A DNA stretch of 64,000 bases, from assembly GCF_006345805.1 (NCBI RefSeq), contig NC_043005.1:21328001-21392000 (forward strand), in the 5' to 3' direction. The translations under genes were made by a program, and so were the position numbers. Origin of the DNA: Octopus sinensis (Eukaryota). Below the pieces are notes generated by a model. That model made no database searches and was not told the origin of the DNA. It saw only the letters and a program-made list of their open reading frames with translations. Positions within the stretch are counted from its first letter, which is position 1. Every line of letters starts with the position of its first letter. Below, piece after piece: positions 1,260 to 61,205 of the stretch.

Positions 1260-1430
1260 TTTACACAAAAGTTAACTGTGGGCCTCCAATTGATGTTATT
1301 GGAGCATCAAAGTCCTACAAAACCACCACCTATAAATCTGAAGTGATCTACTCTTGCCCAATGGCAGAAAAACTAAAGTCAATATGTGACAAGGACAACA
1401 AATGGAGTCCAGTAGCACCTGTTTGTAAAG
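1260..1430 (+). CDS. Exon S1: compact sushi/CCP-like module
   Basis: ttcAG|..G|GTaatg, 171 nt. YTKVNCGPPIDVIGASKSYKTTTYKSEVIYSCPMAEKLKSICDKDNKWSPVAPVCK, pattern C-x25-C-x9-C-x5-W-x6-C. Confidence 0.9.
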
Positions 1431-2141
1431 GTAATGTAAAAAACTTCTCTCTTGTTGCCTCTGTCTTTGTAATTTTGTTAGATTTTTTCTTTAAATTATA
1501 TTTTATTTTCTTTGCCCATTTTTATACCTGTAAACAAACCTATTTTAATTCCTCACTTCTGCATATATCCAGATGCCTAAATTATATATCATAAAACCCC
1601 ATGTTTGAAACAGAATTGAAGAAATATTTATAAATACATAGCCCATACATTTCCATGAAACACAAGGGTTAAAATCTCTTCAAATCAAATTGCTTATGTA
1701 ACAATGAACACGAAGAGAGAGGGAGAGAGAGAGAGATACAGCAAACAAACTTTACGCCTACCAAAATCCTTTTGTGAACATCAAAGCACAAGATAAACAA
1801 GTTTCTATACTAGCAACACTGTCACATGCCTGACTAATAACCCCCACCTTCCAATCAAAATAGAAAATACCTTAAATAACAACTAGAACAAGTAAAGAAA
1901 TTTCGTTTTTGCCTGTGGTCTGCAAGATTCTTTATGTGAATTCATGTGTTGAAACATATTTTATTGTGTCTGGGGGGAGTCATTTTATTTTAGTACTTTA
2001 TTAATTTAACACACCAATTTCCGCTCATTTACTTATTTATTTTTACTACGTATATATCTGTATGTGCATGCACACTGATGTACACACATGTGCCCCACCC
2101 CCCAAAAAAGAACACAATTCTGATAATGGACAGAGTCAACA

Positions 2142-2180
2142 ACTATTGAAAAGTTTGTAAGTCACAATGAAAATTTTAGT
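2142..2180 (+). ncRNA. Minimal type-I hammerhead-ribozyme-like motif (U3-A8 variant) in the 5' repeat of PLE copy 1; degenerate
   Basis: ACTA-TTGAAAA-G-tTTGT-aagtc-ACAAt-GAAA-AT-TT-TAGT. Stem I is acta/tagt, GAAA is intact, and the closing pair of stem II is broken. Confidence 0.6.
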
Positions 2181-5100
2181 AAAAATAAGTAAATAAATGA
2201 GTGGAAATTGGGGAGTGTGTTAAATTAATAAGGCACTAAAAGAGAATGACTTTCCCCAGACACAATAAAATATGCTTCAAACACATGAATTTACATAAAG
2301 AATCTTGCAAACCACAGGCAAAATCAAAATAAGATAAGCTTTGGCCAAGCTAACAAGATGTTGAAAAACACTGTGTTCTGCTGTCTAAAAATCAAAATAG
2401 CTACCTGATAGCTCAACTTAATTAAAACATGCATCTCTACCAAGCTATACATAAAATCTGTTAATCCAGTTATCCAGTGGCTAGGACTCACAGAACATCA
2501 AGCTAGAAGACTAAAACACACAATGTTACAAAACATCAAAAAGAAAATATACACAGAAATCAACCAGTACCAGAAACGAAAGAAGGTCCTACTGCATGAA
2601 CTGAAGAACAACACAAAAGAGACAGATTCATGACAAACATCCAACAAGAATACCACTGAGTAAACCATGCCTGTATCAAACACTTCAACAACCTCAGCAT
2701 GATAAGAATCAACATAGATACCCAAACAATATCGATGGAATTGTCATGTCAGAATGTAAACTACCAGAGGACTTCAGCACCAGGACACCAAAAAACAATA
2801 CAACCAGCAACAACAACAATTACACCTCTGGAATATACGGTGCAGTACAGCTAGATACACATGAAATGCATGCTTTAGAGTTACCACTGAAATTTGCTAC
2901 ATATAAGGACAGTAAAATTGATTGTCTGCTGAGATTGATAAAACGTTCTTAAAAAACAAACAAAAAAGATGGAAGTTGGGACAATAAAACAACACATACA
3001 TATGAAACCAAAACAACAACAATAACAATGTTAATGACAACAATAGTGACGATAATAATACCAACAATGATAACCACAACATTCCCAACTCAAGCCACCA
3101 TAATAACAACAACAACACAAATGTAAGAAACATCAAAACAGCAACAATTGTAACAACAAAGATAAGGCCACCCCACACACAGACAACAATACCAACCACT
3201 ACCAGCATCGATACCACCCACAACAATAACAACAACCACAAACACTACCACCACCACAACCCCCACTAGCAACAACAATACCAAAAATTATAACAGCAGT
3301 AACCACAATGATAATAATACCCTACACTCTATCTTCTGTATCCCCAACAACAACAAATCACATGACATGACCAGGATCTACCCCACAAACTTACACTTCA
3401 ACAAGAAGGTATGTATCCCACCACAGATTGACAGTGAGAAAGAAGCAAAGATTCCCTTGGCTAGAAATAGACTCCAACACATGTTAGACCAGTACAACAA
3501 AACCACTGAAAGACATAATGATGGGGAGACCCACCAACTCAGTACATCAGTTGCCAAAGGCCTACAAAAACTGAAACAGCAAATTAGGATAGAGAATTAG
3601 TGTGCTTCCCTACGGACAAGTCTAGCAGACTGTCAATAAACAGCCCAAGAACTATGTCCAGATCATGCAACAGCACATCAGTAGCATGAGAGAAGTTGCA
3701 CTACAGGAACATGAAAGAGTGGAAAAACTCCTCAATGCACAGATGAGAATGTGGTACAACATACTCCGACCCAAGAAACGGACTGCACAAAATTTCCAAG
3801 CATCCAACACAATGCTCCTATGCTATACAGATTACATAAAGACCATAAAACCTATGCAAACTCTGTCATGAGGTCCCCAACCTCATGTGAATATTGCCAG
3901 CAATTATAGACTATCCTATTTTCTGTCACAGGTATTATGACCACTCATTGAAATGTCCCCAGATGTCTGCATGAGCATGGAGGATCTCCTCAGTAGAATC
4001 AGTAGTTGCAACCACTCCAGTGATCTCATAGGTTGTGTAGTGAGTAGTATGGATGTAATTTCATTCTACCTATCTATAGACATAAATTTTGCTATGGAAA
4101 ATTGCATTGAGATTATCAGTGAGAGTGAGGTAGAGTTCCAAGAAGTCCACACAAGGGAACTGGGCCTTCTCCTTAAACTGAGCTATGACAGTAATTATCT
4201 AGACAACTATGACCTTAATAGATTCTGCCTACCAGGTGACAGAGGGGAAAACTACCTTGGCAGTGAAGAAAAGCACCGTAGAGCACAGGAGTGGCTGGAC
4301 TACACCGACCCAAGACTCTGAGAACAACAGGCAGGTGAAAAGAATAATTGCACATGCAATAGGGGTTAGCATAAGAACCATCTTGAAGAACCACATTGTA
4401 AAGTTTAACTAGAAACCATACATGAAGGTTTAAGGTGCAGCCATTGGTGTTGGTGTGGCTGGAGATGTGGCCAGCCTCTTCATGACTTGGTGGGACAGAA
4501 AACTAAAACAATCCTTCGCAGAACAATCCACGATTGTTTTACTTTACTGTAGGTGTATTGATGACATTAACATTCTAGTTAGGACAAACTCTAGTAAAGT
4601 GCAATGTAGAAACTGAGAGGAATATAATGGAGAGCATCCAGCATGTAGCTAACTCCATCCCCCAAAGTATCAAGGTAACTATAGATTACTCCACTTGTCA
4701 TCCTAACAATAGACTCCCTGTCCTTCATACTGAACTTTGGTTAGAGGTTGTGAACAACAAGGTGAAGCTCCTCCACTCCTATTACATGAAACCTATATCT
4801 TCTAAATATGCTGTTCACAAGAACACAGCTTTGTCACACAACATGAAAATCAACATACTAATAGCATACCTAGTTAGGATAATGAGTAATGTGTCCCAAC
4901 TATGTGAACCCTATGAAACAAAGAAACATCTATAGAACTTCATACACTGCATGCAATTCTCTGGATATGATCAGAAGGATAGGGTTCGGGTATACAGGGT
5001 TGCTATAAAGAAGTTAGCATTATAAGTAATGCCCGAGATATAGATATAGAGACTGGAATAGGATACAAAGAGCTCATGACAAAGAAAACAGGGTGAACAT

Positions 5101-6176
5101 GTGGTACAAAAACCGACAAATATCAAGGAGTGATGTTTGTAGAGGCCACAGCCCATGGTGAACTAGCCCGGAGATTTAGGAAAGCTATGAAGGAGGCTAA
5201 ACTCAGCATCAAGATTGTTGAAAAGTCATGGAGCACCATCAGATCACAACAATATAGGACATACCCCTTTGAGAATATCACATGCGCCAATGATAACTGC
5301 ATGACATGTAAGATTAACCCTGGCATTTACCGTAGAACTAGAAGTGAACTTTACAGCATAAGGTGCATAGAGTGTGCTTGTAAAGACAAGAACAAAATAT
5401 ACATAGGTGAGACATCTAGGACCATTGAGGAGAAACTAAATGAACATCTGAGACAACATGACAACAAAAACAATCCTACATACTCTACCATGATGCCAAA
5501 GTCCAACAGAGTGGGTCAACTTGACATCTGCATTTTATCAAAGAACCCAAAGGACCCAACACTCAGACAAGTCCAAGAGTACATCATCATTAATGAAACA
5601 TCTCCAGTACTAAATAAGAAATATACATAGGTGTCATACCCGAATACCAAAAGCCGTTATGTAGGTGTGTGTGTGTGTGTATATGTATATATATATGTGG
5701 GTAAATGGATACATATATGGACAGGTAGATATACAGATAGATAAATATGTAATATGACCAGACAGGCACAAACACACACATACATGGCCATACACACACA
5801 CTTCACACAAGGACGCATATGGAGACATATTCATACATAACAGACACACATACATAGTCATACAAATCCATACACAGACACACACAAGGAGATAGAGGTA
5901 CACACACAAATACACACATATATACACATAATAATGAACACAAACACGAACACACAAGCACATGGATATACAGAATACATACATACATACAAATGTGCAC
6001 ACATGCATACATATATATGCATACACACACACACATACATGCATCATACATACAAATGTACACACATGCATACATATAAGCATACATACACACATGTGTA
6101 TGCGCATGCACACGGATGCACACACAAGTGTACAAAAAAGAAAATAAGAGTGCAATTCCAATAACAAGATTCAACA

Positions 6177-8983: not shown

Positions 8984-9154
8984 TTTATGCACACATTAAT
9001 TGTGGACCTCCAAAGGAAGTTGTTGGTGCATTAATGAACTACAAAACCACTACCTATAAATCTAATGTGATCTATACTTGTCCAAGGGGAGAACAGCTGA
9101 AGTCAATATGTGAATTGGGCAATAGATGGACTTTCGTAGTGCCTTCTTGTAATG
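8984..9154 (+). CDS. Exon S2: compact sushi/CCP-like module
   Basis: ttcAG|..G|GTaatg, 171 nt. YAHINCGPPKEVVGALMNYKTTTYKSNVIYTCPRGEQLKSICELGNRWTFVVPSCN. Confidence 0.9.
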
Positions 9155-11577: not shown

Positions 11578-11817
11578 TTACTCACATCTATTTTGTGCAA
11601 GTAAAAGGTGCAGTTCTGAATGTAGGTGGGAAAATTATGGTCGACTTGGAAAATGTAACAGCTGAAGCCTGTGCAGCAAAATGTTTGTCTGACAAAGCTT
11701 GTTTATCATTTGAAATAAATAAAGAAAGTGAAAAATGTTACTTATTAAAGGAAAGTGCAACTTCCTCCCAGAAAATAACAGCAACCACAAGCGTAGATTA
11801 CTACCAGCGAGTAAACC
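11578..11817 (+). CDS. Exon A3: PAN/apple-like module, class A
   Basis: tccAG|..C|GTaatt, 240 nt. THIYFVQVKGAVLNVGGKIMVDLENVTAEACAAKCLSDKACLSFEINKESEKCYLLKESATSSQKITATTSVDYYQRVN, pattern C-x3-C-x5-C-x-SF-x8-C with a terminal DYY. Confidence 0.9.
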
Positions 11818-13929
11818 GTAATTATTCTTTGTATTTCAAGACTAGAATTTCTCTTATTTTTCTGAAATTTATTATTCTATTTGTACTTCATAATATATAG
11901 ACAACCATGTCTGGAAAGACATTGACAAATTTACCTATAAGGATAGATAAAGACAAAGTCCTGAAAAAGAAAAGTAATATTAAGAATTGTAAACAGTTAG
12001 GGCATTCTCATACAGCATTTGTTCACAGTGAACACTATTATGCGTGTTTTGAATAGTGTTTTTTAAGTAAAATGGGAAACTTTTGTTGTTTTTATTAAAC
12101 TTCAGCAGCAGCAGTAGTAGTAGTAGCAGCAGCAACAGCAATAGGGGGGGGGTAGTGGTGGTCATAGTGGTAGTGGGTGCTGGTGGTACTGATGGAGGTA
12201 GTAGTAGTAGCTGTTGCAGATGCAGTAGAAATAACTACAGGTTTCTCTTCATTTGTTTGTGTTAGCATCACATAGACAGTGTGTTACAGCACAGTGTCTC
12301 ACTACTAGTTGTTGTTCTTCATACTCCAATATACAGGATAAAAGAAAAAGTAATGCCAATGTATGTAGTTGTGTATTTTCTATGTTTTGCCATGGTTATT
12401 ATAGCAAGAGACCCTTCTTATCACCAGTCATACTGCATGGTGAGAGTACATTTCCCTGTGCTATCAGAATTTGAGAAGTTGTCTGCTGGGACTAAAGAGT
12501 CTTTTCTGCTTAAAACAAATTTCTCTTCAGAATAATTTTATGGTATTAAGAACCAACTAGTCAGCAGATTCACTCAATGTGAACTTAAAGATTTTGTCTA
12601 TTCCTAATGAAATCCTTCCTTCCTGAAACCATGGACATCAGGGGAAATTTACTTAGTTTAGTGATCTTGATATTTGAACACTCATGAATGCTAGGATGTC
12701 ATTATTGATGAATATTTCGGGGTCAAAAAGAAAGCTGAGCCATTTCACTGTATATGTGAGGAAATTTACTGAGCTACAAATATAACTATATTTAACTAAG
12801 TAGACATTACTTTAGAAATGAGGTTTGGTATCAGACTAGTAATACTCTTACAGAAAGCCTAACAAGGAGAACAGACACCTTTCCGGAAATTTCAACTCTT
12901 ATTCTCAAGTTATAATAAGAAACATAGTAGCCAGCATTACTAAAAGAGTATCCAATTTATCAACAATTGGAGACATTTGTGACCATAGCTTTTGCAATAC
13001 AGGGTGTTACCTAGGATTGGTTTTAGCGTGAAGTTAGTATAAACAGAGTATCTTCCACCTCCACATCTGAAAAAGAATTAGAAAGAGGATAACTTGATTC
13101 ACTCTATCTCTCAGTCTAAATGTCTCCCTGAACATAGCTGGGGAATTATAATCCTCCATTTAAAATTATTTCTCTGGTACATTTAAGTATTAAAAACTTA
13201 TGACTGTGCATAGTTTTAAGGTTTGTTATTCCTTTGAAGATTACATGACTTCCAACATTGTATGTGGATAAGAAAGTGTGATTCACTTACCTCTCTGGTT
13301 TTCTCATAGCACCGATCCTTTCCAACCAGGTTATATCTGTAGCTGCCTTACCCGCCTGACCTCTGGCCAGAACCTAATAGCAAATTCCCTCTTCTCCACA
13401 CAGTTACTACATCCACCCCATATGACTGCTCCATTCAAAAAGAGGGCCACATTGATCCTGCTTCCTCTCATGTGATGTCCCTCACTCCTCTCTTTCTGAC
13501 AAGGCTATTTAGCTGACGCTATACTCATATCTCATCATATTTCATCCCCACATGCCCCTCTGATCTCAAAGATTACCCCATCACCTCACTCCATGTCAAA
13601 ATCTGCCATCCACCTGGGTGGATGTCTTACCTGCTGTGACTTCTGCAGGGATGGAGTACTGCTCACATTCTCTCCTCTTCCTCCTCCTCCTCCATCATCT
13701 GACATATTGACAGACCTACAGACATCCAAGACATAATGTGGAATTCCATCAACAGACATTATTTTGAGAATTAACAGTCATTACTATTCCTTTTCTCTAT
13801 TGAGATGTGCAGTGCACATTTGGGGGCACAACTCAAACTTCATCTCCTGACTACATAAAGGTAGGCCCTCTCTTTTCTACAGGTCATTGAGATATCATAC
13901 ACAGATGTTGCCATTCATATCTCAGTATT

Positions 13930-15479: not shown

Positions 15480-17893
15480 GCAACAATCATCCACACCACT
15501 ACCAACAACACCACCACCACATCAACACCAACAGTGACACCAACCATCACACCACCACCAATAATAGCAACAACATTATCATCATCAACACCAACAGCAA
15601 CACTACCCACAGCAATAACAGCAACAACAATGGGCAAAACACAAGCACTACCATTACCACAACCACCAATAGCAACAACAAAGTTAGCAACTATAACAAC
15701 AACTGCAACGATAATAACACTCTACACTCTGTCTTCTGTAACCCTAACAACAAATCTTATGACATGACAAGGATCTGTCCCACAGACTTACCCTTCAACA
15801 AAAAGGTATGTATCCCACCCCAAATTCACAGTGTAACAGAAGCAAAGATCTCATTGGCTAGAAATAGACTCTGATACATCTTAGACAGTACAACAAATCC
15901 ACTAAAAAACATAATGAAGAGGGGACCCACCAACTAAGTTCATCTGTTGCCAAAGGCCTACAAAAACTGAAACAGCTAATTAGGAATAGGGAATTAGTGA
16001 AGTAGAGTTCCATGAAGTCAACACGAGGGAACTGGGCCTCCTCCTTTGACTAAGGTACAACCATGACCTCAGTAGATTCTGCCCCACCAGGTGACAGAGG
16101 GGAAGACCACCCACCATCACCTCAGCAGTGAAGAAAAGCATCACAGAGTACTGGAGTGGCTGGAGTGTACTCACCCAAGACCCTGAGAACAACAGTCAGG
16201 GGAAAGGAATGATTGCACATGTAATAGGGGCTAGCGTAAGAACCACTTTGAAGAACCACATAGTAAAGTTTAACAAAACACTATACATGCAGATTCAAGG
16301 TGCTGGCATTGGTGTCAGTTTAGCTGGAGATGTGGCCAGCCTCTTCATGACCTGGTGGGACAGAAAACTTAAGCAATCCTTAGCAGAACAGTCCATAATT
16401 CTTCTACTTTACAGTAGGTATGTAAACAGCATTAATATCCTAGTTAAGACCAACTCTATTAATGGTAATGTAGAAACTGAGAGGAACATAATGGAGAGCA
16501 TCCAGCAAGGAGCCAACTCCATCCACCAAAGTATCAACGTAACTATAGATTACCCCATTAGGCACCCTAACAATAGACTCCCCATCCTTCATACTGAACT
16601 TTAGTTAGAGACAGTGAACAACAGAGTGCAGCTCCTCCACTTCTATTACATGAAACCCATTGCTTCTAAATATGTTGTTCACAAGAACTCAGCTTTTTCA
16701 CAAGGCAGGAAAATTAACATACTGATAGCAGACTTAGGCTAATGAACGTGTCCCCATTATGCAAACCCTATGAAATGAAGAAATATGTACAGAACTTCAT
16801 GCATCACATGCAGTTCTCTGGATATGATCAGAAAGATAGGGTTCGGGTATACAGGGGTGCTAGAAAGAAGTTATATAACATTATATGTAATGAAACCAGT
16901 GGTACCTGCCCTAGATATAGAAGCAAAGACGGGAATAGGATACAAAGAACTCATGAAAAAGTAAACATGGTATAAAACTGACAAATATCAAGGAGTGATT
17001 TTTGTAGAGGCCACAGCCCATGGAGAACTAGCCCGTAGATTTAGAAAAACTCTGAAGGCAACCAACCTCAACATTAAGATTGTTTAAAAGCCAGGGAACT
17101 CCATCAGATCACAACAATGTAGGACGTACCCCTTTGAGAATGCCATATACACCAATGATAACTGCATGGTACGTAGGATTAGCCCTGGCATTAACTGTAG
17201 AAGTAGAAATGTAGTCTACAGCATAAGATGCATAGCAGGTGCTTGTAAAGACATGAACATGACATATATAGGTAAGACATGTAGGATTATTGTGGAAAGA
17301 CTAAAGGAACATTTGATACAATATGACGCCAGAAAAACAGTCCTCCATACTCTACCAACATGGAGGCAACCTGGATCAACTTGACATTCACATTTTATCC
17401 AAGCATCCAAAGGACCCAAACCCTCAGGCAAATACAGGAGAACCTACTCATAAATGAAAATCCCCAGTACTAAATAGGAAATATACATAGTAGATAATCA
17501 TACCCCAACACCCATAGTATATATTTATATACAGGTAGAATAATTAGTGGGTTGTTATGTAGATGTATGTATATATGTGTGTGTGTGTGTGTATGTATAT
17601 GCACATGTATGTAGGCAAATGGATATAAAAGTAAGCAGATAGATATACAGATGGATAGGTAATGTGAACAGACACATACACACACATGCAAAACACTTAC
17701 ACAAAAACACACAAACCTGAACACAAAAACATATGAATATGCAGAATCCAGGGTCAACAGTTATTGAAAAGGTTGTGAGACGCAACAAAAATTTTAGTTA
17801 AAAAATGTAATTATGTAAAGAAGTGGAAATTTTACCAGTGAGTGTGTTAAATTATAGGGCACTAAAAGAGAATGACTCTCCCCAAACACAATA
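15480..17893 (+). mobile_element. Penelope-like retroelement (PLE copy 2): 5'-truncated, with an internal deletion
   Basis: Colinear with copy 1: MTRICPTDLPFNKKVCIPPQI, YMQIQGAGIGVSLAGDVASLFMTWWD, SRYVNSINIL, YSIRCIAGACKDMNMTYIGKTCR. About 540 bp equivalent to copy 1 3590-4130 is missing. Ends in the same terminal repeat (..gactctccccaaacacaata). Confidence 0.87.
17760..17798 (+). ncRNA. Hammerhead-like motif in the 3' repeat of PLE copy 2; degenerate
   Basis: gTTA-TTGAAAA-G-GTTGT-gagac-GCAAC-aAAA-AT-TT-TAGT. G12 is changed to A. Confidence 0.6.
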
Positions 17894-18508: not shown

Positions 18509-18742
18509 CCGATGGAGCGCCTCTTGTGCTTAAAAATACTAGCATAGCAAGCAAACATACATTTGAACGTCTTGAGAATTTAACCCTAGCTGACTGTCAG
18601 GAAGGTTGTTATCTATATACAGACTGTTCATCATATTCATTCAATACCAAAGCTGAGATCTGTGAACTGAGTCGTGCGAATGAGTTGAGTCATATAATTC
18701 ACCATGACAGTGAAAGTTTGGAGGTACATGTTCTTAACCAAG
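18509..18742 (+). CDS. Exon B4: PAN/apple-like module, class B
   Basis: tccAG|..G|GTcagt, 234 nt. DGAPLVLKNTSIASKHTFERLENLTLADCQEGCYLYTDCSSYSFNTKAEICELSRANELSHIIHHDSESLEVHVLNQ. Confidence 0.88.
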
Positions 18743-20525: not shown

Positions 20526-21150
20526 TATCAAAAGATTCCTGGACTAGCTATGTTTAATAAAAAATAATTAATTTACCTAAGTTTTAACATCTTTAAAATA
20601 GTCACCTTGTACAGCAATACACTGGTCCCAGTGTCTCAGCCATTTTTGGAATCCAGCCTGGAAGTCATTTTCTGTAAGTGAGCCAAAGACCTTCTGCGAT
20701 TCACTCTGGATCTCTTCAGCAGTGTTCAAGCAGCAATCATTGAGTTGCATTTTCATCCTGGGGAAGAGATGGAAGCCCACAGGTGGAATAGGGTGGGTGC
20801 CAAAGCAATGCCATGTTGGTTTTGGTGAGGAACTCATGAGTGAGGAGATCTCAGTGAAGAATCCAATTCTTTGTGCTTCACAGATCCAGCCACTTTCACC
20901 AACTTGCCTCCCTCAAATGCTTCAAAACATCGCAGCTGGACTCACAATTGACAGTCTGGCCTTGGGGTACAAATTCTCAATGCACAATATCACATTTCCA
21001 GGAGATGCTTGTGGCTGGTCTTCCAGATTGCTCATTGTCTTCCAGGGACATTCTTCTGCTTTTGAAGCACCCATGCCACTCGAAGCATTGTGTATGTCCC
21101 ATTGCCATAAGCTTGCCAAAGTATAATAGTAAACAACCGACTATATAGGA
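20523..21150 (-). mobile_element. Mariner transposon fragment (transposase C-terminus and TIR), internally deleted
   Basis: FHLFPRMKMQL..IQSESQKVFGSLTENDFQAGFQKWLRHWDQCIAVQGDYF. TIR-like ggtatcaaaaagattcctggact. Confidence 0.8.
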
Positions 21151-21349: not shown

Positions 21350-21520
21350 CTCACAAAAAAATTGACTGTGGTCCACCAAAAGACATTGCTGGTGCAAAGA
21401 TGTCCTACAGTGCCACCACCTATAGAGCTGAAGTGATCTATACTTGTCCAGGAGGAGAAACAGTGGAATCAGTATGTAAAGAGGATGATAGATGGACTCC
21501 AGTTGCATCTGATTGTGGAG
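21350..21520 (+). CDS. Exon S5: compact sushi/CCP-like module
   Basis: ttcAG|..G|GTaatg, 171 nt. HKKIDCGPPKDIAGAKMSYSATTYRAEVIYTCPGGETVESVCKEDDRWTPVASDCG. Confidence 0.9.
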
Positions 21521-25746: not shown

Positions 25747-25983
25747 ATACTCAGATGCATTTTGTGAAAGTAAGTGGTGCAATTCTACATGTACCTGGGA
25801 AAATATTGTGGAATGAAAATGTAACAGCAGAAGACTGTGCAAATGAATGCTTATCTGACGATACTTGTTTATCATTTGAAATAAGTAGAGGAAGTGGAAA
25901 ATGTTACATATCAAAGGAAAGTGCAGCTTCTTCCAACAGATTAAAACCAACCAATAAAAGAGATTACTATCAACGAATAAAAC
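25747..25983 (+). CDS. Exon A6: PAN/apple-like module, class A (one codon shorter)
   Basis: tctAG|..C|GTaatt, 237 nt. TQMHFVKVSGAILHVPGKILWNENVTAEDCANECLSDDTCLSFEISRGSGKCYISKESAASSNRLKPTNKRDYYQRIK. Confidence 0.9.
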
Positions 25984-27392: not shown

Positions 27393-27432
<40 letters not shown>

Positions 27433-36950: not shown

Positions 36951-36982
36951 GTTGTTTCTGACATGACTAGCTTTTTGAAATA

Positions 36983-37610: not shown

Positions 37611-37659
37611 AAAGGTACACATAAGCAGGCTGGTTATGCTCCTGGCATGGGCCAACTCA

Positions 37660-38510
37660 TAATCAGTTATTTAATCATTGTTCATGACCCTAGCGGCTCA
37701 TTAGAGGTAGTAGATAATTTCTGCTAGCTAGGTGACCAAATTAGTAAAGGGGGAGGATGCATGGAGTGTCTGATAGCTGGCTACAAAGGGTTTATCTCAC
37801 AGACTGAAAAGAAGATTGTATGATGCATCTATACAGACAACAATTCTACATGGTAGTGAGACATAGGCCTTGAATTCAGAGGACATGTGAAGGTTAGAAA
37901 GGAATGAGGCTGTTATGCTCCACTGAATGTGTAATGTAAGAGTACATGTTTGACAGGGTGCTAGTGTTTTGAGAGAGAAGTTAGGCATAAGAGGAATTAG
38001 TTGCTGCATGCAAGGGAGAAGACTGCACTGGTTTGATCATGTGATATGGATGGTTGCTGACAGCTCCATAAAGAAGAGCTGATCTCTCATTGTAGATGGA
38101 ACACATGGATGTGAGAGACCTAGGAAGATATGAGACAAAGTACTGAAGAAAAACCCCAGAACACTGAACCTTTCAGGCAAGATGACTAAGGACCGAGATA
38201 CCTGGCACCTTGCTCAACACAAGAAGACCAATACTCTGCAGCAGAAGTGTCAAGACTGGTCCCTCTGGTGGTGTAAAGCACTCCTAGCAGTGCTACATAA
38301 AAGTACTTGTGCAGTGCTATGTAAAATTGCCTGTGCGGTGCCACATAAAAGCACCCAGCACACTCTGTAAAGTGGTTGGCATTAGGAAGGGCATCCAGAC
38401 ATAGAAATCGCACCAAATCAGACTGGAATCAGGTGCAATTCCCCAACTTGCCTGCTCTGGTTAAACCATCCAACCTATGCCTTCATGGACAATGGATGTT
38501 AAATGATGAG
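37660..38510 (+). mobile_element. RTE LINE 3' end (C-terminal ORF remnant and tail)
   Basis: + strand remnants KGLSHRLKRRLYDASIQTTILHGSET and LREKLGIRGI, followed by the tail gtggttggcattaggaagggcatccag..gttaaatgatga. Confidence 0.75.
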
Positions 38511-39484
38511 GATTTACAGTCATAGTGAAATATCATGAGAGAAGGTAACAATATTGCGTAATAACTATGTCTTTCTCAAGAGCATTAAATGTTTACATAA
38601 AATGAACTGACTTAGGCTGAGAATCAAACCCAGATCATTGACTCACTCCACTCAATCTATATTTATACTAAAAGATCAACTAAGGAAAAGAGTCACTTCT
38701 TGAATGGAAAACAAATAGTAAGGTGGCTACTTGTTGAATGAAGATATTCTGATTAATAAAATTTTCACTCTCATTGAATGTTAAAATTAGCTTCCTTCTG
38801 TTCATGAAGTTCAAAAGCAACAACCTTGTAAAGATAATCTTCATCTTACTAAAAGTGTAATTTTGATGAATTAAAATCTCTTAGTTTGTTGCATTAAATT
38901 GTGAGTGCCCATATGTATACTATTTATTTATATTTATTTACTACAAATGTTAAAAGTGAAATTATTTTTGTTTACAAGAGCAAAAGATTGGGAAATGAAT
39001 AAAGTCATGGGTCTCAATGTGACAAGCCATACTTAGTCTCATCCTTTTAGATGTACTTCACCTTTCATATTCTGAGGTTGATAAAACAAGCTCTATTCAA
39101 GTACTGCAATTGATTTATCTTCCTGTATCCTCATTGCAGAACATGTGGCCTCGTGTTTATGTTAGGAACTGTTATCAATAATACTGATAACATCAACATT
39201 ATTTATAAATATTTTTGTTGTTAAAGGTGGTGTACTGACAGAATCATTTGAACATCAGATAAAAAATATGCTGTGGTATTTTTTCTGGCTTTGAATTTAA
39301 ATCCTGCTGATATTAACTTTGCCATTCCTGGGCTAATAAAATAAAAAAAAAAAAAAAACAGTCAAGTGTAGAGAGGCATTTTAATTGTCCAGTTCTGATC
39401 TCAGATATTTTACCTACTTTCTATATTAGAAATTGTTGTTGTTATTGATATAGTTCATCGGTCTAAATTTTACTTTAACTCTAG

Positions 39485-39724
39485 ATCCTCAGATCCATTT
39501 TGCGAAAGTAAGTGGTGCAGCTCTGGATGTACCTGGGAAAATATTGTGGTATAAGAAAAATGTAACAGCAGAAGCCTGTGCAGAAAAGTGTTTGTCTGAA
39601 GAAACTTGTTCATCATTTGAAATAACTAAAGAAGGTGGGAAATGTTACTTATCAAAGGGAAGTGCAGCTGCCTCTACGAAAATAAAATCAGCCAAAGACA
39701 GAGATTACTACCAACAAGTAAAAC
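39485..39724 (+). CDS. Exon A9: PAN/apple-like module, class A
   Basis: tctAG|..C|GTaatt, 240 nt. PQIHFAKVSGAALDVPGKILWYKKNVTAEACAEKCLSEETCSSFEITKEGGKCYLSKGSAAASTKIKSAKDRDYYQQVK. Confidence 0.9.
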
Positions 39725-42700
39725 GTAATTATTTTTTGTGTTTTATTATTGGATTTACTTTCCAGCATTCACTAATATCCAATTTCATTTATAGTTCATA
39801 GTATATGCACAATGACTTCTGTAAAGACGGACATAAATATCTTCCTGAAAAACAAAATTTATATCAAGAATAGTAAATACTTTAGGACATTCTTATACAG
39901 AATTTGTTTAACTTAAACATTCTTATGCATGCTTTTAATCATATTTTTATGTAAAAACACAATGTTTTTCTTAAACCTGAGTGGTGGTGGTGGTGGTGGT
40001 GGTGGCAGTGCTGTCAGCAGTAGTGGTAGCAGCAGCAGCAGCAGTAGTAGTAGTGACAGCAACAACAGCTTTTTCTTCATTTTTCTATATTAGCATAGCT
40101 TAGGCAGTGCTGTTACAGCACACTATCACACCACTATTGCTCTCCTACATAATCCAACATGCAAAAGAACAGTAAAAGTAATGCCGATCTATGTAGCCAT
40201 GTAAGATACCCTTCAAAACACCAAATGTCTGATGGAGTGTACATTTTCCCATGAAACTAGAATTATAGAAATTGTCTACTGGGACTAACAATTCCTCTCT
40301 ACCTAAAGTAAGTTCCTCTTCAGAATAGTTCCAGAGTATCAAGAACTAAACAGCCAGCAAATTCACTCATATTTATTTCAAGATTTTATCTTTTTCTGTT
40401 GAAATCCTTCCTTCTTGAAATCTTAAACTAGGTTTAGTGATCTCAGTATTAGAATACTCATGAATGTGAGAATATAATTGCTATCATGATGAATCTTTCT
40501 GACTCAAAGAGAAAGGTGAGCCATTTCTCAGTATATCTACAACAAAATTTAATTGGGATAAAGTTGTAGACTTCACTGCATTGCTTATCTTGGACACCCC
40601 AAGAAGTTTAATTATATTCATATATCAAATTTATACAGAGAAAATAGCCTAGCAATTTCAATAATATGAATTGCCATGCCATGAATAGATTTAGGAAGTA
40701 ATTTACATGAATTTTCTAGTTGAGATTTAAATATAACAATCACCATCAATCTAACTACATGATTTGTATATAATGAGTTTTCCTTTTTACAAAATTAAAC
40801 ATCACATGCTTTACAATATCATTCAACTATGGTAGTAGTTGAATAATATTCTTAAGGCCACAATTTATTTACATGCAGCATCTTCAGAGCTTTGTCTCTA
40901 ATTTAGTTCTTAACCAAATTGAAAACTGTTAACATTTTTGAAGCTACATGTTGGCATAAAAAAATTGAGATGTGGTCTAGTAAAAAAAATCTTGCATCAA
41001 AATTTGTAGCAACATTATAGGAGAGTAAGTACCACCTCCAATCAAGTTTAGATCTAAATACCTTTTTTTTATTTTAAAAGCACAATATATTTATCAATAT
41101 ATTCAATGATAGAAGAAAGCAAGAAGAATAGTTTTGTTCCAATGCAACAAAAATTTGTATCAAAAAAGTTGTGAAGTAAAATATCATGAAAAAAATTATA
41201 AGTAAGGTGAAAAATTGGATTTAAGTATAATTAACCTCTTTTAATTTTAAAAACAAACTATATTTTAACTAAGCTTAAATGATAGAGCTCAATTTGAGAA
41301 ATTTCATGGTATCAATCTCATGCAAGGAAGTACAATCTACATGAGTAGATTGTTTCCAAAATATTTAGAGAAATTTTTTTTGTTGAGAAAAGATGTATAA
41401 ATGTAAACATTCGTATGAGATGTTGGCCCATTTAATGTCAGAATAATTTTTTACAGAATGCTGGATGGTATAATACTTACTTTTTCTGTATAAATTTACC
41501 AAAACCATAAAATGGTTAACTACTTTTTGAAGTTTCATGTTCATACTGGTAATCATGGTCCAGGCCATATTGCTTGAAGTTTCTACCTATCGCAATGGGG
41601 CCCAGCAGTTTCCTTAAATAGATCAGTTTTTCTGCTTAAGAAATCTAGCTTGTGTTTGCTTCCAGGATACTATTGCTCACTCTCTCTGTGTTAGGACAAT
41701 GAAATTCATGACTGCCAACATCGCCGAAGACAACATCATAATTCATCCTTGCAAATGTGAACTCACTAAGTGTATATTATTTATTGTTCCTACAGAAACC
41801 TTCATTTACCTTATACGATGTTTAATATCATTTCACATTCATGTTGAATTATGCAGCAATCTTATGTTCTCTTCATAGAACATTGAATGTATGTATTACC
41901 AGTTCTTTTGGTATAGTAGATTTATGCTATTCTTGTCTATGTCTCCTCACAGACATGTATATTCTAACAAGTCACTTCTTAAATTTCACACCTTTCTTGT
42001 TCAATAAACACTGAGTTAAACTTACAAGGTTACTTATCTTCTTCTTTCAATTTTTTAATGTTTATTTTAGTGGGTTACCAAACTATCAGTTTGGTTTCCC
42101 AGCTAAAACAGTAATGACAAATTTTTAAGTGTGAAAGGGATTAAAATTTTAATACTCTGTATCAAATGTTCCAACAAGAATAGACAGATAATCAGAGTTT
42201 GAGACAAGAAGACACTTACAACCAAGCAGAATTCTGTTTACATAATCAGTTTGATCAGTTGCCTTCCACTGTCGGTTGAGTGAAGTGTCATCCATGCTGA
42301 TGTACTTAAACTTGGTACTTAAACTTATTCTGCAATGCTTGTGTGTATTTATCAGCTTTGTTTGTATTGATATGAATTATCAAAAACTTTTCCTGTGATC
42401 GTGATTTGAGAAGACATACAGAAGTGTGCAAAAGATCAGGCATAATCTCTTGTGGGCAAGAAATGTAAAGTAAAGTTTATTATAAACAACATAAACATTT
42501 TGTGATTTAATAGCTTTCAATTTGATACCTGTTAAACAGAAATTATTTTTATTTAATGAACATTCAATAAAATCTAATCACATGTGAGTGAAATTATGTT
42601 AAATACAACTAAATTGAAAACCTTTTTTCCCTGGCTAGATCGGCAATTCTGAAAACTTTTGGGTGCAAATTTTGCACAAGTAGAAGCTTTTTTTAACAAT

Positions 42701-43211: not shown

Positions 43212-43445
43212 CCTATGTTAAGCCTGTGATGCTGAAAAAAGTTAGTCTACCAGAAGAGGATACTGTAAAACAGTTTACAAATATGGATTTAAATGAGTGT
43301 AATAAGGCTTGTTCTCGATATGCAGGATGTAATTCTTACCAGTACAATCAGAAAGATAAAATTTGTGGGCTCAATAAAGTGACTCAGTTGACTGAGAAAC
43401 TTAAACCCAACAAAGGAAATAAGGATGCTTACTTCCTTACTCCAG
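43212..43445 (+). CDS. Exon B10: PAN/apple-like module, class B
   Basis: tccAG|..G|GTcagt, 234 nt. YVKPVMLKKVSLPEEDTVKQFTNMDLNECNKACSRYAGCNSYQYNQKDKICGLNKVTQLTEKLKPNKGNKDAYFLTP. Confidence 0.88.
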
Positions 43446-44872: not shown

Positions 44873-45682
44873 TAATCAAACCAAATCAAAATAGATGAAC
44901 ATCAATGTAATTTGTATCTTTGTGGTACCAGTGCCGGTGGCACATAAGAAAACCATCCGAACGTGGCCGTAGCCAGTACTGCATCGACTGGCCTCCGTGC
45001 TGTGGGCATGTAACAAACACCATCCGATCATGGCCGTTCACCAGCCTCGTCTGGCACCTGTGTCGGTGGCACATAAAATCACCCACTACACTCTCGGAGT
45101 GGTTGGCATTAGGAAGGGCATCCAGCTGTAGAAACACTGCCAGATCTGACTGGCCTGGTGCAGCCTTCGGGCTCCCCGGACCCCAGTTGAACCGTCCAAC
45201 CCATGCTAGCATGGAAAGCGGACGTTAAACGATGATGATGATGATATGTGTGTGTGTATGTATATATATATAATCAAACCAAATCAAAATAGATGAACAT
45301 CAATGTAATTTGTATCTTTGTGGTACCAGTGCCGGTGGCACATAAGAAAACCATCCGAACGTGGCCGTAGCCAGTACTGCATCGACTGGCCTCCGTGCTG
45401 TGGGCATGTAACAAACACCATCCGATCATGGCCGTTCACCAGCCTCGTCTGGCACCTGTCGGTGGCACATAAAATCACCCACTACACTCTCGGAGTGGTT
45501 GGCATTAGGAAGGGCATCCAGCTGTAGAAACACTGCCAGATCTGACTGGCCTGGTGCAGCCTTCGGGCTCCCCGGACCCCAGTTGAACCGTCCAACCCAT
45601 GCTAGCATGGAAAGCGGACGTTAAACGATGATGATGATGATGATGATGATGATATGTGTGTGTGTATGTATATATATATATA
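44873..45682 (+). repeat. Near-identical tandem duplication (period 398 bp) of an RTE 3' tail and its flank
   Basis: Copies start at 44873 and 45271 and differ by a 2-bp indel (cctgtgtcgg/cctgtcgg) and in (GAT)n length. Confidence 0.93.
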
Positions 45683-49996: not shown

Positions 49997-50167
49997 CTTT
50001 TAAAAATATTAACTGTGGACGACCAAAAAGAATTGCTAATGCATTAAAAGCCTTCAAAACCACCACCTATAATTCGGAAGTGACCTACACTTGCCCAGGG
50101 GGAAAGGAACTTAAGGCAACATGTAAAGAAGACAATCAATGGGTTCCAACAGTGTCTTCCTGTAAAG
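49997..50167 (+). CDS. Exon S11: compact sushi/CCP-like module (absent from the supplied ORF track)
   Basis: ttcAG|..G|GTaata, 171 nt. Translated by hand: FKNINCGRPKRIANALKAFKTTTYNSEVTYTCPGGKELKATCKEDNQWVPTVSSCK. Confidence 0.9.
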
Positions 50168-51954: not shown

Positions 51955-52630
51955 GTGACAAGTCTTCTTTCAGGGCAGAGAAATCTCCCATTTCTGAATA
52001 ATATCATTACAGGTGATGAAAAATGGGTCAACACAGAAAGCAGTGAATTGTCAAGGATAAATTTTCACAACTTACCTCAAAGGCTGAGCACCATGGAAGG
52101 AAGGTTATGTTGTGTGTATGGTAGGGTTGCTGCTGTATTATTCATTGAGTTTTTAAATCAAACACTAAATTCTGACTTACACTCTCAACAGCTGCAACAT
52201 GTGCATGAAGCTCTTTTAAGAAAATGCTGTGCATTCATCAATTGGAGAAACATTGATGATAATGCAAAAATACATTCAGCAAGAATCATGCAGGATGAAA
52301 TACTGGATTTGGGCTGGCATGTTCTACCCCTTCCACCATATTTGCCAGACCTTGCACCAACTGATCTATCTTTTTCGCTCTCTACAAAATGCTCTGATGA
52401 CGAAAAAATGTTCTCATGAACATCAAAAGAAGACATACATTGAAAGCTTCTTCATGCTGAAGCCAGCTGAATTTTATTCAAGAGGAATCAAAAAGCTTTC
52501 TGATAAATTGTAAGAGGTCATTCAAAATAATAACAACTATACTGATAAATGAAAATTATTTGTAAAGTTTTTACATGATGAGAAAAGGTGTTTCACAAAT
52601 TTGGAAATTATTCATGAGTCAACCCATTAG
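51955..52630 (+). mobile_element. Mariner transposase fragment
   Basis: ORF 51955-52419: PFLNNIITGDEKWV..DDNAKIHSA..LPLPPYLPDLAPTDL. Confidence 0.82.
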
Positions 52631-53061: not shown

Positions 53062-53301
53062 TTGCTCAGAACCATTTTATAAGAGTAAAAGATGCAATTC
53101 TGGAGGTATCTGGGAAAATATTATGGAAAAAGGAAAAGGTAACGGCAGACATGTGTGCAGAAAAATGTTTGTCTGACATTACTTGTTTATCATTTGAAAT
53201 AACTAAAGAAAATGGAAAATGTTACTTATCAAAAGAAGGTGCAGCTAACTCTAAGAAAATAGATACAGCCAAAAGTAGAGATTACTACCAACAAATACAA
53301 C
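53062..53301 (+). CDS. Exon A12: PAN/apple-like module, class A
   Basis: tacAG|..C|GTaatt, 240 nt. AQNHFIRVKDAILEVSGKILWKKEKVTADMCAEKCLSDITCLSFEITKENGKCYLSKEGAANSKKIDTAKSRDYYQQIQ. Confidence 0.9.
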
Positions 53302-53944
53302 GTAATTACTCTCTGTATTTTATTATTGAATTTTCTTTTCCTCTTTTACTGAAAGGTTTTATTCCATTTGTATTTCATAATATAAATAACCATTTCTGTA
53401 AAGACATTGACATTTATAAGGAGAGACAAAGATATAGTTCTGAAAAACCAAAGCAGTATTAACTCATAAAGTGCTGGGATTTGCACTAACACAGATGGAC
53501 TGCTGAGCACATTTCATGAAAATGAGACTACCATGCATCCATGAAAAACAAAAAAATAGTTAAAATATCTTAGTATATGATGGTGGCTAGTTTTATATCA
53601 TCTGAAAAGTCATTAGTTGAACTATTAGTCCTCTTGCATTCTGGACATTTGAGTAACATCAGACCCTAACAAAAGTCCATAAATTAAATGCATCTATCTG
53701 GGCCAGAATCGTGGCCTGTCAACATGTGCCTGGCAACCACAATCATGGCCTGTTGCACTTTATGTGATAAGAAATGTAAATACTGTTAGGGTGTTCTCAA
53801 TCGAATTTGTTCACATTGGATACCTTCTTTTTTTTCTCTGTGTGTGTGTGTAAGAAAGGAAACATGTTATTTTTCTTAAACCTGAATTGTAATAGTAGCA
53901 GTAGTAGCTGTAGTAGCAGCAATAGTAGTAGTTGTAATTTCAAA

Positions 53945-56990: not shown

Positions 56991-57359
56991 CATCCTAGTC
57001 ATATAATGGTAGTTGGGCAACAGCCATATGCCAAGTGAATCTCAGTATCTGTAGTAATGTATCTTATCTATATAAGATACGTGATGTGACACAGTCTGAA
57101 TTAACAGATACAACTCAACTAGATGTACTATATCCCATCCATAAGGGACAGATGCAATATGAGTGTGCTGAATAAAGATTCTTGATCAATCCATTGAACA
57201 CTGCAGAGTTCCTGATGTAGATCCAGTGACAATTATATCATAACTGGGAATGACATCAAGTAGCCTAAATGGTGAAAGTGCTCTAATCAACATTCTACCC
57301 CAAATCCAAATAATTACCTATAGAAACATAGATATATATATATATAAATCAAAATCACA

Positions 57360-57757
57360 TCAATGACTGGCATCCGTACTAGAGGAGTGCAAAGAGCACC
57401 ATATGAGTGTAATTGTTGACAGAGTGGCTAACCGGCCTCCATGCCAGTGGCACATAAAAGGCACCATTCAAGTGTGATCGTTACCAACGTCGCCTTACTG
57501 GCACCTGTGCTGGGGGCATGTGTAAAAAGATTCGAGCGAGGTCATTGCCAGTACCACCTGACTGGCTCCCGTGCCGGTGGCACATAAAAAGCACCCACTA
57601 CACTCTCGGAGTGGTTGGCGTTAGGAAGGGCATCCAGCTGTAGAAACTCTGCCAAATCAAGATTGGAGCCTGGTGCAGCCATCTGGTTCACCAGCCCTCA
57701 GTCAAAATCGTCCAACCCATGCTAGCATGGAAAGCGGACGTTAAACGATGATGATGA
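57360..57757 (+). mobile_element. Young RTE 3' tail copy
   Basis: ..cactacactctcggagtggttggcgttaggaagggcatccagctgtag..catggaaagcggacgttaaacgatgatgatg. Confidence 0.85.
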
Positions 57758-58652
57758 TATATATATGCATCTCAGATCAAAAAATTTCCCAATTGGAATT
57801 GTGAAAACCACTTCTGGTACTGTACACATCACATATCTTACTGCAGGTTTCTGCTGCTTTCTTACCTGTTTAAAATTTTTAAAAAGCATGAGGCATCGAT
57901 AATGATGCCAAACTCACAAAATGCAACTGGTCTTGTTGCAATGCAAATTTGTGTTGAACTACAAGGAAGTGTCAAGTATCTAATGAGCACACATGTGCAA
58001 GACATTGACTGAAGTTAGCTACTTATCGAAGTAATTGAAATTTAGTGTTGACAAAAACTGAATGGACTTTCTAGCCAATCCAATAGAAACTATGTTATTA
58101 AAAATTTAGATAATTATGTAGAAGTACCATATAACTGAAATTTTGAATAAAATATTTGAAAGCCATTTGCTTCTTTATTTTTTTAATGGACAATATATTA
58201 TAAAAGATTATTCCATCCACAAAATTTTTTTATGCATGAATTCACTTCCATCTTGAAACATGCTAAGAACCTCACCACATTGTTTAGGCTGTAGATAATC
58301 TGTCTATCTCTCTTATAATGGTGTGTTTTTGTTTAAGACTGAATGGCAATAACAAGAATTTGACATGCTGGCTGGCCATCTTTTGAACAGCATTTAGACC
58401 TTACAAAAGCATGATATTAGTAAAAAGGATGTACAAATGGATCATATGCAACTTAAATTTTGAAACAAAGTTTCAAATAAGTCTGAAGAATTTCTTCATT
58501 CACGTGAATTCTAAGTTGTATTTTGTGGATCAGTTATTTATTTGTAATATATTGTCCATTCAAAACAAATTATGCACCAGATGCTATATAAATTTTAAAT
58601 ATATGTGTGTGTGAGTATAAGATATATTTTTTGTTTCCTTTTTCTTTTCTAG

Positions 58653-58886
58653 CCAACGATGAGTTTGTTGCATTTAAAAAAGCTTTCATACCAGGGTATG
58701 ACACATTTCCACAGCTGACAACTATGAGCTTAATGCAGTGTTATCAAGCCTGTCATAAAACCCTAAGATGTAACTCCTTTGAGTATCATGAAAGAAGAAA
58801 GCTCTGTAATCGAAGTAATGTGACTCATTTGACTCACAACCTTATACCCAACAAAGAGGGTTGGGATATTTACCTCATTAACCCAG
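58653..58886 (+). CDS. Exon B13: PAN/apple-like module, class B
   Basis: tctAG|..G|GTcagt, 234 nt. NDEFVAFKKAFIPGYDTFPQLTTMSLMQCYQACHKTLRCNSFEYHERRKLCNRSNVTHLTHNLIPNKEGWDIYLINP. Confidence 0.9.
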
Positions 58887-59879: not shown

Positions 59880-60580
59880 TAAATGTAAATGGCACCTGTG
59901 AGTCATAGTCATTGCTGGTGTCATGCAAATGGCATCCATGAATCATAGTCGCGGTTGCTGCTAGTGCCATGTAAATGGCACCCACATGTGAATCATAGTC
60001 ATGGTCATTGTAGGTGCCATATAAATAGCACCCACCCTTCGATTGTAGTTGTGGTTGTTGCCAGTGTTATGTAAAAGGTAGATAAAAGCATCCATTATAC
60101 TTCTGGAGTGGTTGGCATTAGGAAGGGCATTCAGCCATAGAAACCATGCCACATCAGACTGGAACCTGGTATAGTTCTCCAGTTAATTAGTTCCAGTCAA
60201 ACTGTCTAACTCATGCTAGCAGGAAGAACAGATGTTAAATGATGATGATGAGGAGGAGGAGGAGGAGAATATATATATATACATATCCGTTGTCTATGCT
60301 GGCATGGTTTGACCAGTGTTGGCAAGCTGGAAGGTTGCACCAGACTCCAATATGACTTGGCATGGTTTCTATGGCTGGATGCTTTTCCTAACGCCAACCA
60401 CTCCAGGTGTGTAACAGGTGCTTTTGTGTACCAGCAGCACAGGTGCCATTTGCAAGACACTGGTACCAACTACAACTATGACCCATGGTTGGGTGCTATT
60501 TATATGGCACTGACAATGACCATGACTATGATTCATGGGTGTTCTTTGCATGACACCAGCAATAACTAGGACACACAGGT
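59880..60580. mobile_element. Two RTE 3' UTR/tail copies of one subfamily, tail-to-tail inverted
   Basis: 59880-60250(+) and 60290-60580(-) share tcattgctggtgtcatgcaaa, tgaatcatagtcatggtcattgt and gccatataaatagcaccca. Confidence 0.8.
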
Positions 60581-60608
60581 GGCATTTACATTCACTGACC
60601 AACACACG

Positions 60609-60640
<32 letters not shown>

Positions 60641-61034
60641 CACACAGGCACAGGAGTAGTTGTGTGATAAGTAGCTTGCTTACCAACCACATTGTTGAAC
60701 TTGGGATCTTGGGGAGAGAATGCAAATCCTTAATTCATATGTTAGAAATGATCACAATATCTGGAACTATAGAAATTTGCAAGACCTTAAGATTTAAAGG
60801 CTGATAGTGAAAATAGATACATACATGCATGCTTACATGCATACATGCATGCATACATACATACATACATCATACATACATACATACATACATACATACA
60901 TACATACATGTGGGCAAATTTTTTTAAAGTTTGGTTCATTCAATAACTTTCATTGCAGCATTGTCATTATCTCCTTATTCTCACCCATCTAATATACACT
61001 CACCATTGATATCAATTTCTCTTATCAATTTTAG

Positions 61035-61205
61035 ATTTCCAAAAAATTGATTGTGGACCTCCAAAAGACGTTGCTGGTGCTGTGAAAGTCTACAGATCCA
61101 CCACCTTTAAATCTTTAGTGACATATAATTGTCCAAGTGGAGGAGTATTTAAGTCAATGTGTGAAAAGGACAAAATATGGACTCCAGTACCTCCTACATG
61201 TGAAG
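61035..61205 (+). CDS. Exon S14: compact sushi/CCP-like module
   Basis: tttAG|..G|GTaatg, 171 nt. FQKIDCGPPKDVAGAVKVYRSTTFKSLVTYNCPSGGVFKSMCEKDKIWTPVPPTCE. Confidence 0.9.

Follow-up and report, generated by a model that had tools for sequence, protein, structure and literature searches.

The 64,000-nucleotide stretch of the Octopus sinensis genome analyzed here (contig NC_043005.1, positions 21,328,001 to 21,392,000; hereafter the window) carries 14 exons, each encoding a single sushi (complement control protein, CCP) or PAN module. We judge it somewhat probable, reading from sequence, that these exons are an interior slice of one giant gene, whose product would be a secreted, glycosylated, lysine-rich binding scaffold. 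Such a gene would cover at least ~0.57 Mb in O. bimaculoides and a longer stretch in the other two species, O. vulgaris and O. sinensis, with an exon total that extrapolates to some 150–300. Exon structure, module folds, the hierarchy of repetition, its continuity over annotated borders, lineage restriction and evolutionary rates are described below from direct observation; from these we infer a single transcript, secretion, a type of ligand and candidate tissues.

Exons, module folds and hierarchical repetition

The exons were first found as cysteine-patterned stop-to-stop frames on the + strand, and their exact borders were then read from the DNA. They follow the order S-S-A-B-(S-A-B)x3-S, where S is a sushi module and A and B are two types of PAN module. 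Joined, they amount to 2919 nt, or 973 codons, with no stops. A pyrimidine tract and AG precede and GT follows all 14 exons (28 of 28 splice sites canonical), with donors that differ by exon type: gtaatgta for five of six S exons (gtaatata for S5), gtaatta for A and gtcagt for B. The length of each exon is a multiple of three and its phase is 1 at both ends, so that any exon copy stays in frame. Introns range from 1.6 to 7.6 kb. None of the 56 cysteines (four in each domain) has been lost. A six-frame tblastn search with all 14 peptides detected no extra or decayed S, A or B exon in the window, including the S1–S2 gap and the region 3' of S6, and neither a signal-peptide-like exon nor a GON exon was found in the window. 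The preliminary description of this DNA had listed 14 exons in this order, 973 open codons, invariant cysteines, a set of N-glycosylation sequons and no termini within 64 kb, and all of these are confirmed at the level of DNA-defined exon borders.

The joined protein scores as PAN_1 (PF00024, E = 1.8e-65, 8 stretches) and Sushi (PF00084, E = 5.2e-12) in Pfam, and individual A, B and S exons exceed the Pfam gathering scores by themselves. When 28 cassettes are aligned, four cysteines in each module never vary (12 in all), nor does the sushi tryptophan; the invariant positions of the sushi module are C6, C32, C42, W48 and C55. In sequence comparisons with the PDB, matches of the S part are DAF, CR2 and MCP, and those of the B part are MIC4 and SML-2. 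The S exons thus belong to the sushi family by hidden Markov model (HMM) score, conserved Cys and Trp, and PDB matches. An AlphaFold model of a B-S-A-B fragment of a homolog, based on an eight-sequence alignment, has a mean predicted local distance difference test (pLDDT) score of 82.6, which exceeds 90 over the A-B pair. Foldseek matches this model, with a probability of 1.0, to the apple domains of factor XI and kallikrein, Toxoplasma gondii MIC4, the Sarcocystis lectin SML-2, and the N domains of HGF and plasminogen (root-mean-square deviation 2–3 Å over ~85 residues for the latter two, ~3 Å for HGF; 14–24% identity among the fold relatives). The HMM, the model, the Foldseek matches and four invariant cysteines in each of A and B place both in the PAN family. 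The third, N-to-C disulfide of strict apple domains, which have six cysteines, is missing from A and B; with four cysteines they are PAN modules of the plasminogen/HGF kind. Both the sushi and the PAN assignments of the preliminary description therefore hold, by Pfam and by predicted fold.

The repetition of these modules is hierarchical. Joining the window protein to the remainder of LOC118764742, an annotated O. sinensis model that begins in the window, yields an extended protein of 3155 residues and 44 modules in the order S, (SAB)4 S, (SAB)4 S, (SAB)4 S, SAB S, which has a period of 13 exons. The window contains one full period and one S. B modules are of two subtypes that take turns along the array, with 46.6% identity at even lags vs 39.5% at odd lags (permutation p ~0.0015), and S modules fall into positional classes (61.3% at even vs 54.8% at odd lags, p ~0.001; best lag 4), while A modules are more uniform than either. 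The strict (CCP-PAN-PAN)n array first proposed has to be given up, as an extra S follows every fourth cassette, the super-repeat comprises 13 exons, and there are two B subtypes. The super-repeat period and the lag classes of B and S indicate that the array grew in steps of 3, 6 and 13 exons.

S1 (1260–1430; acceptor ttcag, donor gtaatg, pattern CGPP...YSCP...C...W...C, phase 1-1) is the extra S that ends the preceding super-repeat. Cassette 1 begins with S2 (8984–9154), a member of the positional class S2/S4/S7/S9/S12/S14, within which mutual identity is 62–73%. It continues with A1 (11578–11817; four cysteines, an NVT sequon ahead of the first, and PAN_1 E = 2.7e-12 for the exon alone) and with B1 (18509–18742; subtype I, NTS and NLT sequons), which has diverged more than any other copy. 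The S2/A1 junction creates one further NVT sequon. Cassette 2 consists of S3 (21350–21520; Sushi E = 3.1e-05 for the exon alone), A2 (25747–25983; NVT sequon) and the subtype II module B2 (31712–31945; IPGxDTF...WGWDTYI, an NAT sequon past the fourth cysteine, PAN_1 E = 6.4e-09 for the exon alone). In cassette 3, S4 (33578–33748) is followed by A3 (39485–39724; NVT sequon) and B3 (43212–43445; subtype I). Cassette 4 comprises S5 (49997–50167), A4 (53062–53301; its sequon lost to EKVT) and B4 (58653–58886; subtype II, NRS and NVT sequons). S6 (61035–61205) is the extra S that ends the super-repeat of the window, and the next exon of LOC118764742, past the window, is again an S. Conservation across the 28 cassettes extends to three sequon positions, which occur in 18/28, 12/28 and 21/28 of them.

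Continuity across annotated gene models

The six exons A3-B3-S5-A4-B4-S6 are 100% identical to XP_036361601.1, the 'uncharacterized protein' of LOC118764742 (O. sinensis, CM016867.1), and A3 is the first true exon shared with that model. The model predicts 2643 amino acids over 152.7 kb: a 30-residue start, the window exons and then ~2180 further residues. Its start exon (38182–38272, + strand, MTKDRDTWHL...; GT donor at 38273) is an open reading frame beside a remnant resembling a long interspersed nuclear element (LINE). It is spliced to A3, lacks a signal peptide and leaves out the exons S1–S4, and the sequence adjoining it has copies of 76% identity elsewhere among the introns of the array. 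This start exon is probably an artifact of annotation and not part of the gene. The window's first eight exons, S1 to S4, were in none of the models returned by any search. Upstream of the window, model LOC118764741 ends in a truncated A exon of ~52 codons (53564–53719 of that locus) that lies directly before an intact A. Further A and B exons occur in the 3' flank of this model, which fits what the repeat pattern requires ahead of S1.

We mapped S, A and B exons in six loci of O. bimaculoides, O. vulgaris and O. sinensis around annotated models, with 10-kb flanks. In all six, S/A/B order and strand are unbroken through the flanks and the gaps between models, and S-A-B order and super-repeat phase carry across every model border examined. 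One O. vulgaris border separates an A, at the end of an 857-amino acid model, from its own B, inside which a 3597-amino acid model begins. Several array models likewise begin at an internal methionine of a B module, in mid-domain, and model ends run into introns. No signal peptide occurs at the start of the array-model sequences that were read. In O. bimaculoides the models on CM046610.1 lie at 88.258, 88.292, ~88.42 (1865 amino acids), 88.429, 88.457 (4083 amino acids) and 88.794 Mb, and the array extends over at least 88.248–88.816 Mb (at least 568 kb), with exons already present at 88.248 Mb. O. vulgaris has five consecutive models of 2247, 4470 (over 416 kb), 861, 857 and 3597 amino acids, which sum to 12,032 residues.

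The end of the array was located in O. bimaculoides. In the last array model there, a GON domain (PF08685, E = 6.3e-33) is followed by a stop, so that the array end reads ...A-B-GON, and an unrelated, CACHD1-like gene comes next. Neither the window nor LOC118764742 contains a GON domain.

A tandem cluster of separate genes of ~700–4500 amino acids each, with the window covering the end of one and the start of another, would explain why RefSeq and ENA divide the region among several models (two in O. sinensis, LOC118764741 and LOC118764742; four to six in O. bimaculoides; five in O. vulgaris) and why a start exon is predicted at 38182. We regard this as unlikely. The models read have no signal peptide and start inside B exons or in repeat-derived open reading frames; their ends run into introns; order and phase continue over all the borders examined; eight perfect exons of the window are missing from both neighboring models; and a single GON terminus was found, in O. 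bimaculoides. The observations agree better with one gene that has been cut up in annotation, and the earlier characterization of its product as giant, modular and extracellular is upheld.

Database names on fragments of the array are 'uncharacterized' or 'SVEP1-like', and a literature search on the loci, accessions and domain combinations returned nothing on this gene. The preliminary description was correct that the array is not a recognized gene with a named ortholog; it is already present in databases, though, in the form of these fragmentary models. Three public Octopus annotations cut the locus arbitrarily, a first exon derived from a repeat occurs in at least one model, and eight good exons of the window are omitted. 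As a result, expression studies and proteomics probably miss or misassign the gene.

Constraint, exchange and intron growth

In 5000 simulation runs of random substitution at the observed divergence from type consensus (10–26%), ~28 stops were expected in the window exons and ~60% of cysteines were kept, as compared with 0 stops and 56 of 56 cysteines observed; none of the runs was free of stops. Exons are more conserved among copies than are introns, with similarity fading ~60 nt from S and B exons and ~200 nt from A exons. Between O. vulgaris and O. bimaculoides orthologs (six exons, ~390 codons), the nonsynonymous rate (dN) is 0.067 and the synonymous rate (dS) 0.117, giving a dN/dS of 0.57; intron identity of ~90% is in line with this dS. 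Among paralogs in the window dN/dS is 0.5–0.9 for B, 0.6–1.1 for S and 1.0–1.6 for A. The values above 1 for A exons are not proof of positive selection, as dS is unusually low and the flanks are conserved. Taken together, the rates point to a fixed scaffold of cysteines, tryptophan, a few aromatics and three sequon positions that carries fast-changing surfaces.

These figures bear on whether the array is dead or dying, that is, non-functional duplicated DNA. Fragmentary annotation, the high ortholog dN/dS of 0.57 and the truncated A exon upstream, in the LOC118764741 locus, are what decay would produce. Such a reading is scarcely credible given the absence of stops where ~28 are expected, the full complement of cysteines, the 28 canonical splice sites, the clearly better conservation of exons than introns, and the fact that three species retain the orthologous exons, dN being lower than dS overall.

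Copies of the array also bear signs of exchange. A3 shares 95% of its nucleotides (94% of its amino acids) with an A exon of LOC118764741 (~25967–26200 of that locus), and the flanks of the two are only 40–80% identical, which suggests exon-sized gene conversion between distant cassettes. The ~200 nt 3' of each A exon (11818–12020, 25984–26180, 39725–39980 and 53302–53500) have 56–67% column identity over the four copies, on a background of ~30%, and this conserved intron sequence occurs as well in single-exon Octopus contigs of other assemblies. It may reflect splicing control or recent homogenization. In-frame read-through past A exons into an alternative hydrophobic tail was considered and rejected, as A2 reaches a stop after 9 codons and conservation is at the DNA level.

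Some of these features would also suit a generator of diversity, in which the whole array is one transcription unit of up to a megabase or more with probably 150–300 symmetric exons, and cassettes are combined into recognition isoforms, Dscam-like or immune-like, for immunity, self/non-self or gamete recognition. All 14 exons are of phase 1-1, paralogous cassettes (dN/dS near 1) vary chiefly outside the structural positions, with Cys and Trp fixed, the 95% identity patch suggests ongoing exchange, and the conserved sequence beside A exons could be splicing control. Phase 1-1 symmetry, however, is simply expected of duplicated sushi-type exons; the exon types are interleaved and not clustered as in Dscam; and a high dN/dS can come from relaxed constraint, with the low dS of A exons inflating the ratio. 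We consider combinatorial use of the cassettes quite improbable. In a weaker form the idea would reduce to one constitutively made protein that exceeds 10,000–20,000 residues and would rank with the largest known from animals.

One orthologous stretch measures 25.7 kb in O. vulgaris (1478–27160 of the fetched locus) and 10.2 kb in O. bimaculoides (31271–41425 of the fetched locus), a ~2.5x difference, and exons are spaced at ~1.6–2 kb in O. bimaculoides vs ~4.5 kb in the other two species. By this comparison, the introns of the array gene appear greatly expanded in the vulgaris/sinensis lineage.

The introns of the window hold transposon remnants on both strands (5130–5630, ~17090–17384 and 51955–52419 on +; 32320–32625, 20577–20837 and 62622–63013 on –). 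Two copies have an open reading frame for a GIY-YIG endonuclease (Penelope-like; Pfam E = 3.8e-07), and several are fragments of mariner/Tc1-type DDE transposases (DDE_3 E = 2e-06). An element of ~320 bp that resembles a short interspersed nuclear element (SINE) occurs as a tandem pair (44935–45276 and 45333–45655) and at 27412–27621, 36980–37186, 57345–57766 and 60206–60470, and is 80–92% identical to copies in the loci of all three Octopus species. Microsatellites rich in TG/CA and TA are abundant and give rise to spurious open reading frames rich in Cys, Tyr and Ile. The window contains no Rfam RNA families.

Relatives, proposed product and known systems

The O. bimaculoides homolog ending in GON was used as the query of an exhaustive HMMER search of 1.84 billion representative proteins clustered at 50% identity. 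Among the best 150 of 685 matches, interleaved S-A-B arrays occur only in O. bimaculoides, O. sinensis and O. vulgaris, a distribution in which 50% clustering and unannotated genomes could hide further arrays. The matches, headed by XP_036361601.1, break sharply, with about ten Octopus proteins or single-exon fragments at 45–79% identity being followed by pure sushi arrays at ~30% and by small GON proteins. A word-index protein search returned seven relatives for the full query, all from Octopus (43–57% identity), two matches for the 28-cassette profile and one for B+GON; absence from this search means little, because it missed the 100% identical LOC118764742. The conjecture that the array is lineage-specific within cephalopods is right as to lineage specificity, but the range is narrower, with the array seen only in Octopus among the matches considered. 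In cuttlefish, Argonauta and gastropods the same modules occur only in small proteins.

One of these small proteins has close ties to the array. The B+GON end of the O. bimaculoides array matches GON-Abd-1 of Abdopus aculeatus (UniProt R4G2C1, 465 amino acids) with 46% identity. Read by eye, GON-Abd-1 has the architecture signal peptide-A-B-S-GON. Orthologs are O. bimaculoides LOC106874924, O. sinensis LOC115215708 and one O. vulgaris model, all on the chromosome that carries the array. LOC106874924 (CM046610.1, 88.124–88.135 Mb) is situated ~120 kb upstream of the array, with an NDUFV1-like gene between. Like the array it has one domain per exon, and four exons encode its GON domain, with breaks at the positions also seen at the array end. 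Sequence signatures are common to the small proteins and the array: A ends in DYYQRVKP, B contains SNVTHLT and WGWDIYI.NP, and S contains CGxPKD...YxCP. The two differ in that GON-Abd-1 consists of one cassette whereas the array probably has hundreds of modules, in having only ~46% identity in the shared B-GON part, and in the lack of an S before GON in the array. A gene of this small type is the likely founder of the array. GON-Abd-1-type proteins are themselves functionally uncharacterized.

HMMs built from the S, A and B exons of the window match PAN-sushi-GON proteins of cephalopods and other mollusks. Further small combinations of these modules are B-S-S-GON and S-GON (GON-Sep-2) proteins of the cuttlefish Acanthosepion pharaonis, an A-B-A-B protein with signal peptide in Argonauta, and PAN-GON and PAN-S-GON proteins of Lottia, Patella, Haliotis and Gigantopelta. 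The modules and the small PAN-sushi-GON family were thus already known; what appears new is the Octopus-restricted, hierarchically amplified, megabase-scale form. In Argonauta hians the A-B pair is fused to VWD/TIL/VWA domains ('zonadhesin-like'), and in Octopus the pair is fused to WSC domains, so that A-B is a mobile unit of two modules.

The array gene would then have grown by repeated tandem duplication of exon cassettes from a small neighboring gene of the type signal peptide-PAN-A-PAN-B-sushi-GON. The window contains only extracellular-type modules, and the small relatives have signal peptides. The protein has an isoelectric point of ~8.9 and 13% Lys; its A modules have a mean net charge of +7.2 and a basic stretch, SKKIKxxKxR, ahead of DYYQ. 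We envision the product as a secreted, N-glycosylated, disulfide-rich and lysine-rich beaded rod of hundreds of small modules with a GON tail, which might work as an extracellular scaffold for multivalent binding. Glycans, polyanions or proteins would find a large number of individually weak sites on the A-type modules, which are strongly basic, and on the B-type PAN modules, and the sushi modules could serve as spacers between them. Surface residues would change fast while residues that determine the fold stay fixed. Ligand binding by the PAN modules is suggested by analogy with the heparin-binding N domain of HGF and the galactose-binding SML-2 and MIC4.

Several points weigh against this picture. 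No signal-peptide exon of the array occurs in the window or the six loci, and the GON terminus was seen only at the O. bimaculoides array end, not in the species of the window. Total array size is an extrapolation from exon density in the parts that were fetched, and the loci read cover only parts of the array. The single transcription unit is deduced from DNA, and the splitting of the region by annotation pipelines could reflect patchy or absent RNA support. The truncated A exon near the 3' end of LOC118764741 is possibly a decayed copy inside the array, and the ortholog dN/dS of 0.57 is high and could in part reflect relaxed constraint. As to ligands, the proposal draws on charge and on fold relatives that are distant, at 14–24% identity.

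A different use of the same protein is as a secretion of the posterior salivary ('venom') gland that acts on prey tissue or in food handling, and not in a body matrix. The closest named relatives are GON-Abd-1, GON-Abd-2 and GON-Sep-2, names which we take to come from a transcriptome survey of the coleoid posterior venom (salivary) gland. Fast evolution is, moreover, common in secreted feeding proteins. On the other hand, the small paralogs are only 46% identical in the shared part, and a protein of more than 10,000 amino acids would be an unusual product of a secretory gland. Decapodiform cephalotoxins (SE-CTX type) also differ in their domain set, for which LDLa, TSP1, EGF and Sushi, and not PAN, are listed (10.64898/2026.04.09.716377). 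LDLa, TSP1 and EGF are all absent by Pfam from the window protein and seven homologs, and because of this difference in domain set we reject a relation to cephalotoxins. A salivary role seems to us doubtful. Should the array be one gene, gene and protein would be among the largest of any animal, and the locus would be a clean and recent case in which hierarchical duplication of exon cassettes has inflated a small secreted protein. Knowledge of tissue and ligand would tell whether the protein has a part in octopus-specific biology, be it in saliva, in secretions of the skin or suckers, in egg coats or in immunity.

Among known systems, SVEP1, CSMD and CR1 are similar in being large extracellular proteins with tandem sushi modules from phase 1-1 exons, and the sushi modules of the array match DAF, CR2 and MCP. 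Fragments of the array, however, lack VWA, EGF, pentraxin, HYR and CUB domains, two-thirds of array modules are PAN, and these proteins match the array only over the sushi stretch, at ~30% identity. The SVEP1 label on fragments is rejected accordingly, as Pfam scans of the window protein and seven homologs show only PAN, Sushi and, in one, GON. With ADAMTS9, ADAMTS20 and Caenorhabditis elegans GON-1 the array has in common the C-terminal GON domain found in O. bimaculoides, but no metalloprotease, disintegrin or thrombospondin repeats; the 'ADAMTS9-like' label of small mollusk PAN-GON proteins reflects the GON domain only and is likewise rejected. The N domains of plasminogen and HGF, the apple domains of factor XI and prekallikrein, MIC4 and SML-2 share the fold and the four core cysteines of the array PAN modules, and the A modules are basic, as is the heparin-binding N domain of HGF. 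The array PAN modules differ from the factor XI apple in lacking its third disulfide, and from PAN/apple proteins at large in lacking a protease, kringle or microneme context; the likeness is one of fold, and binding is predicted. An analogy to ZP-domain apical matrix proteins (NompA/NOAH), raised in the preliminary description, is without support: the same Pfam scans contain no ZP or transmembrane match in any fragment, a glycosylphosphatidylinositol-anchored terminus was likewise not found, and the sole C-terminus found, that in O. bimaculoides, is GON and a stop. In architecture alone, analogs are the Ig/Fn super-repeats of titin and the repeat array of abalone VERL, in which exon-per-domain units are duplicated hierarchically, as they are here in steps of 3, 6 and 13 exons, and copies bear signs of exchange, although domain types, cellular location and lineage are unrelated.

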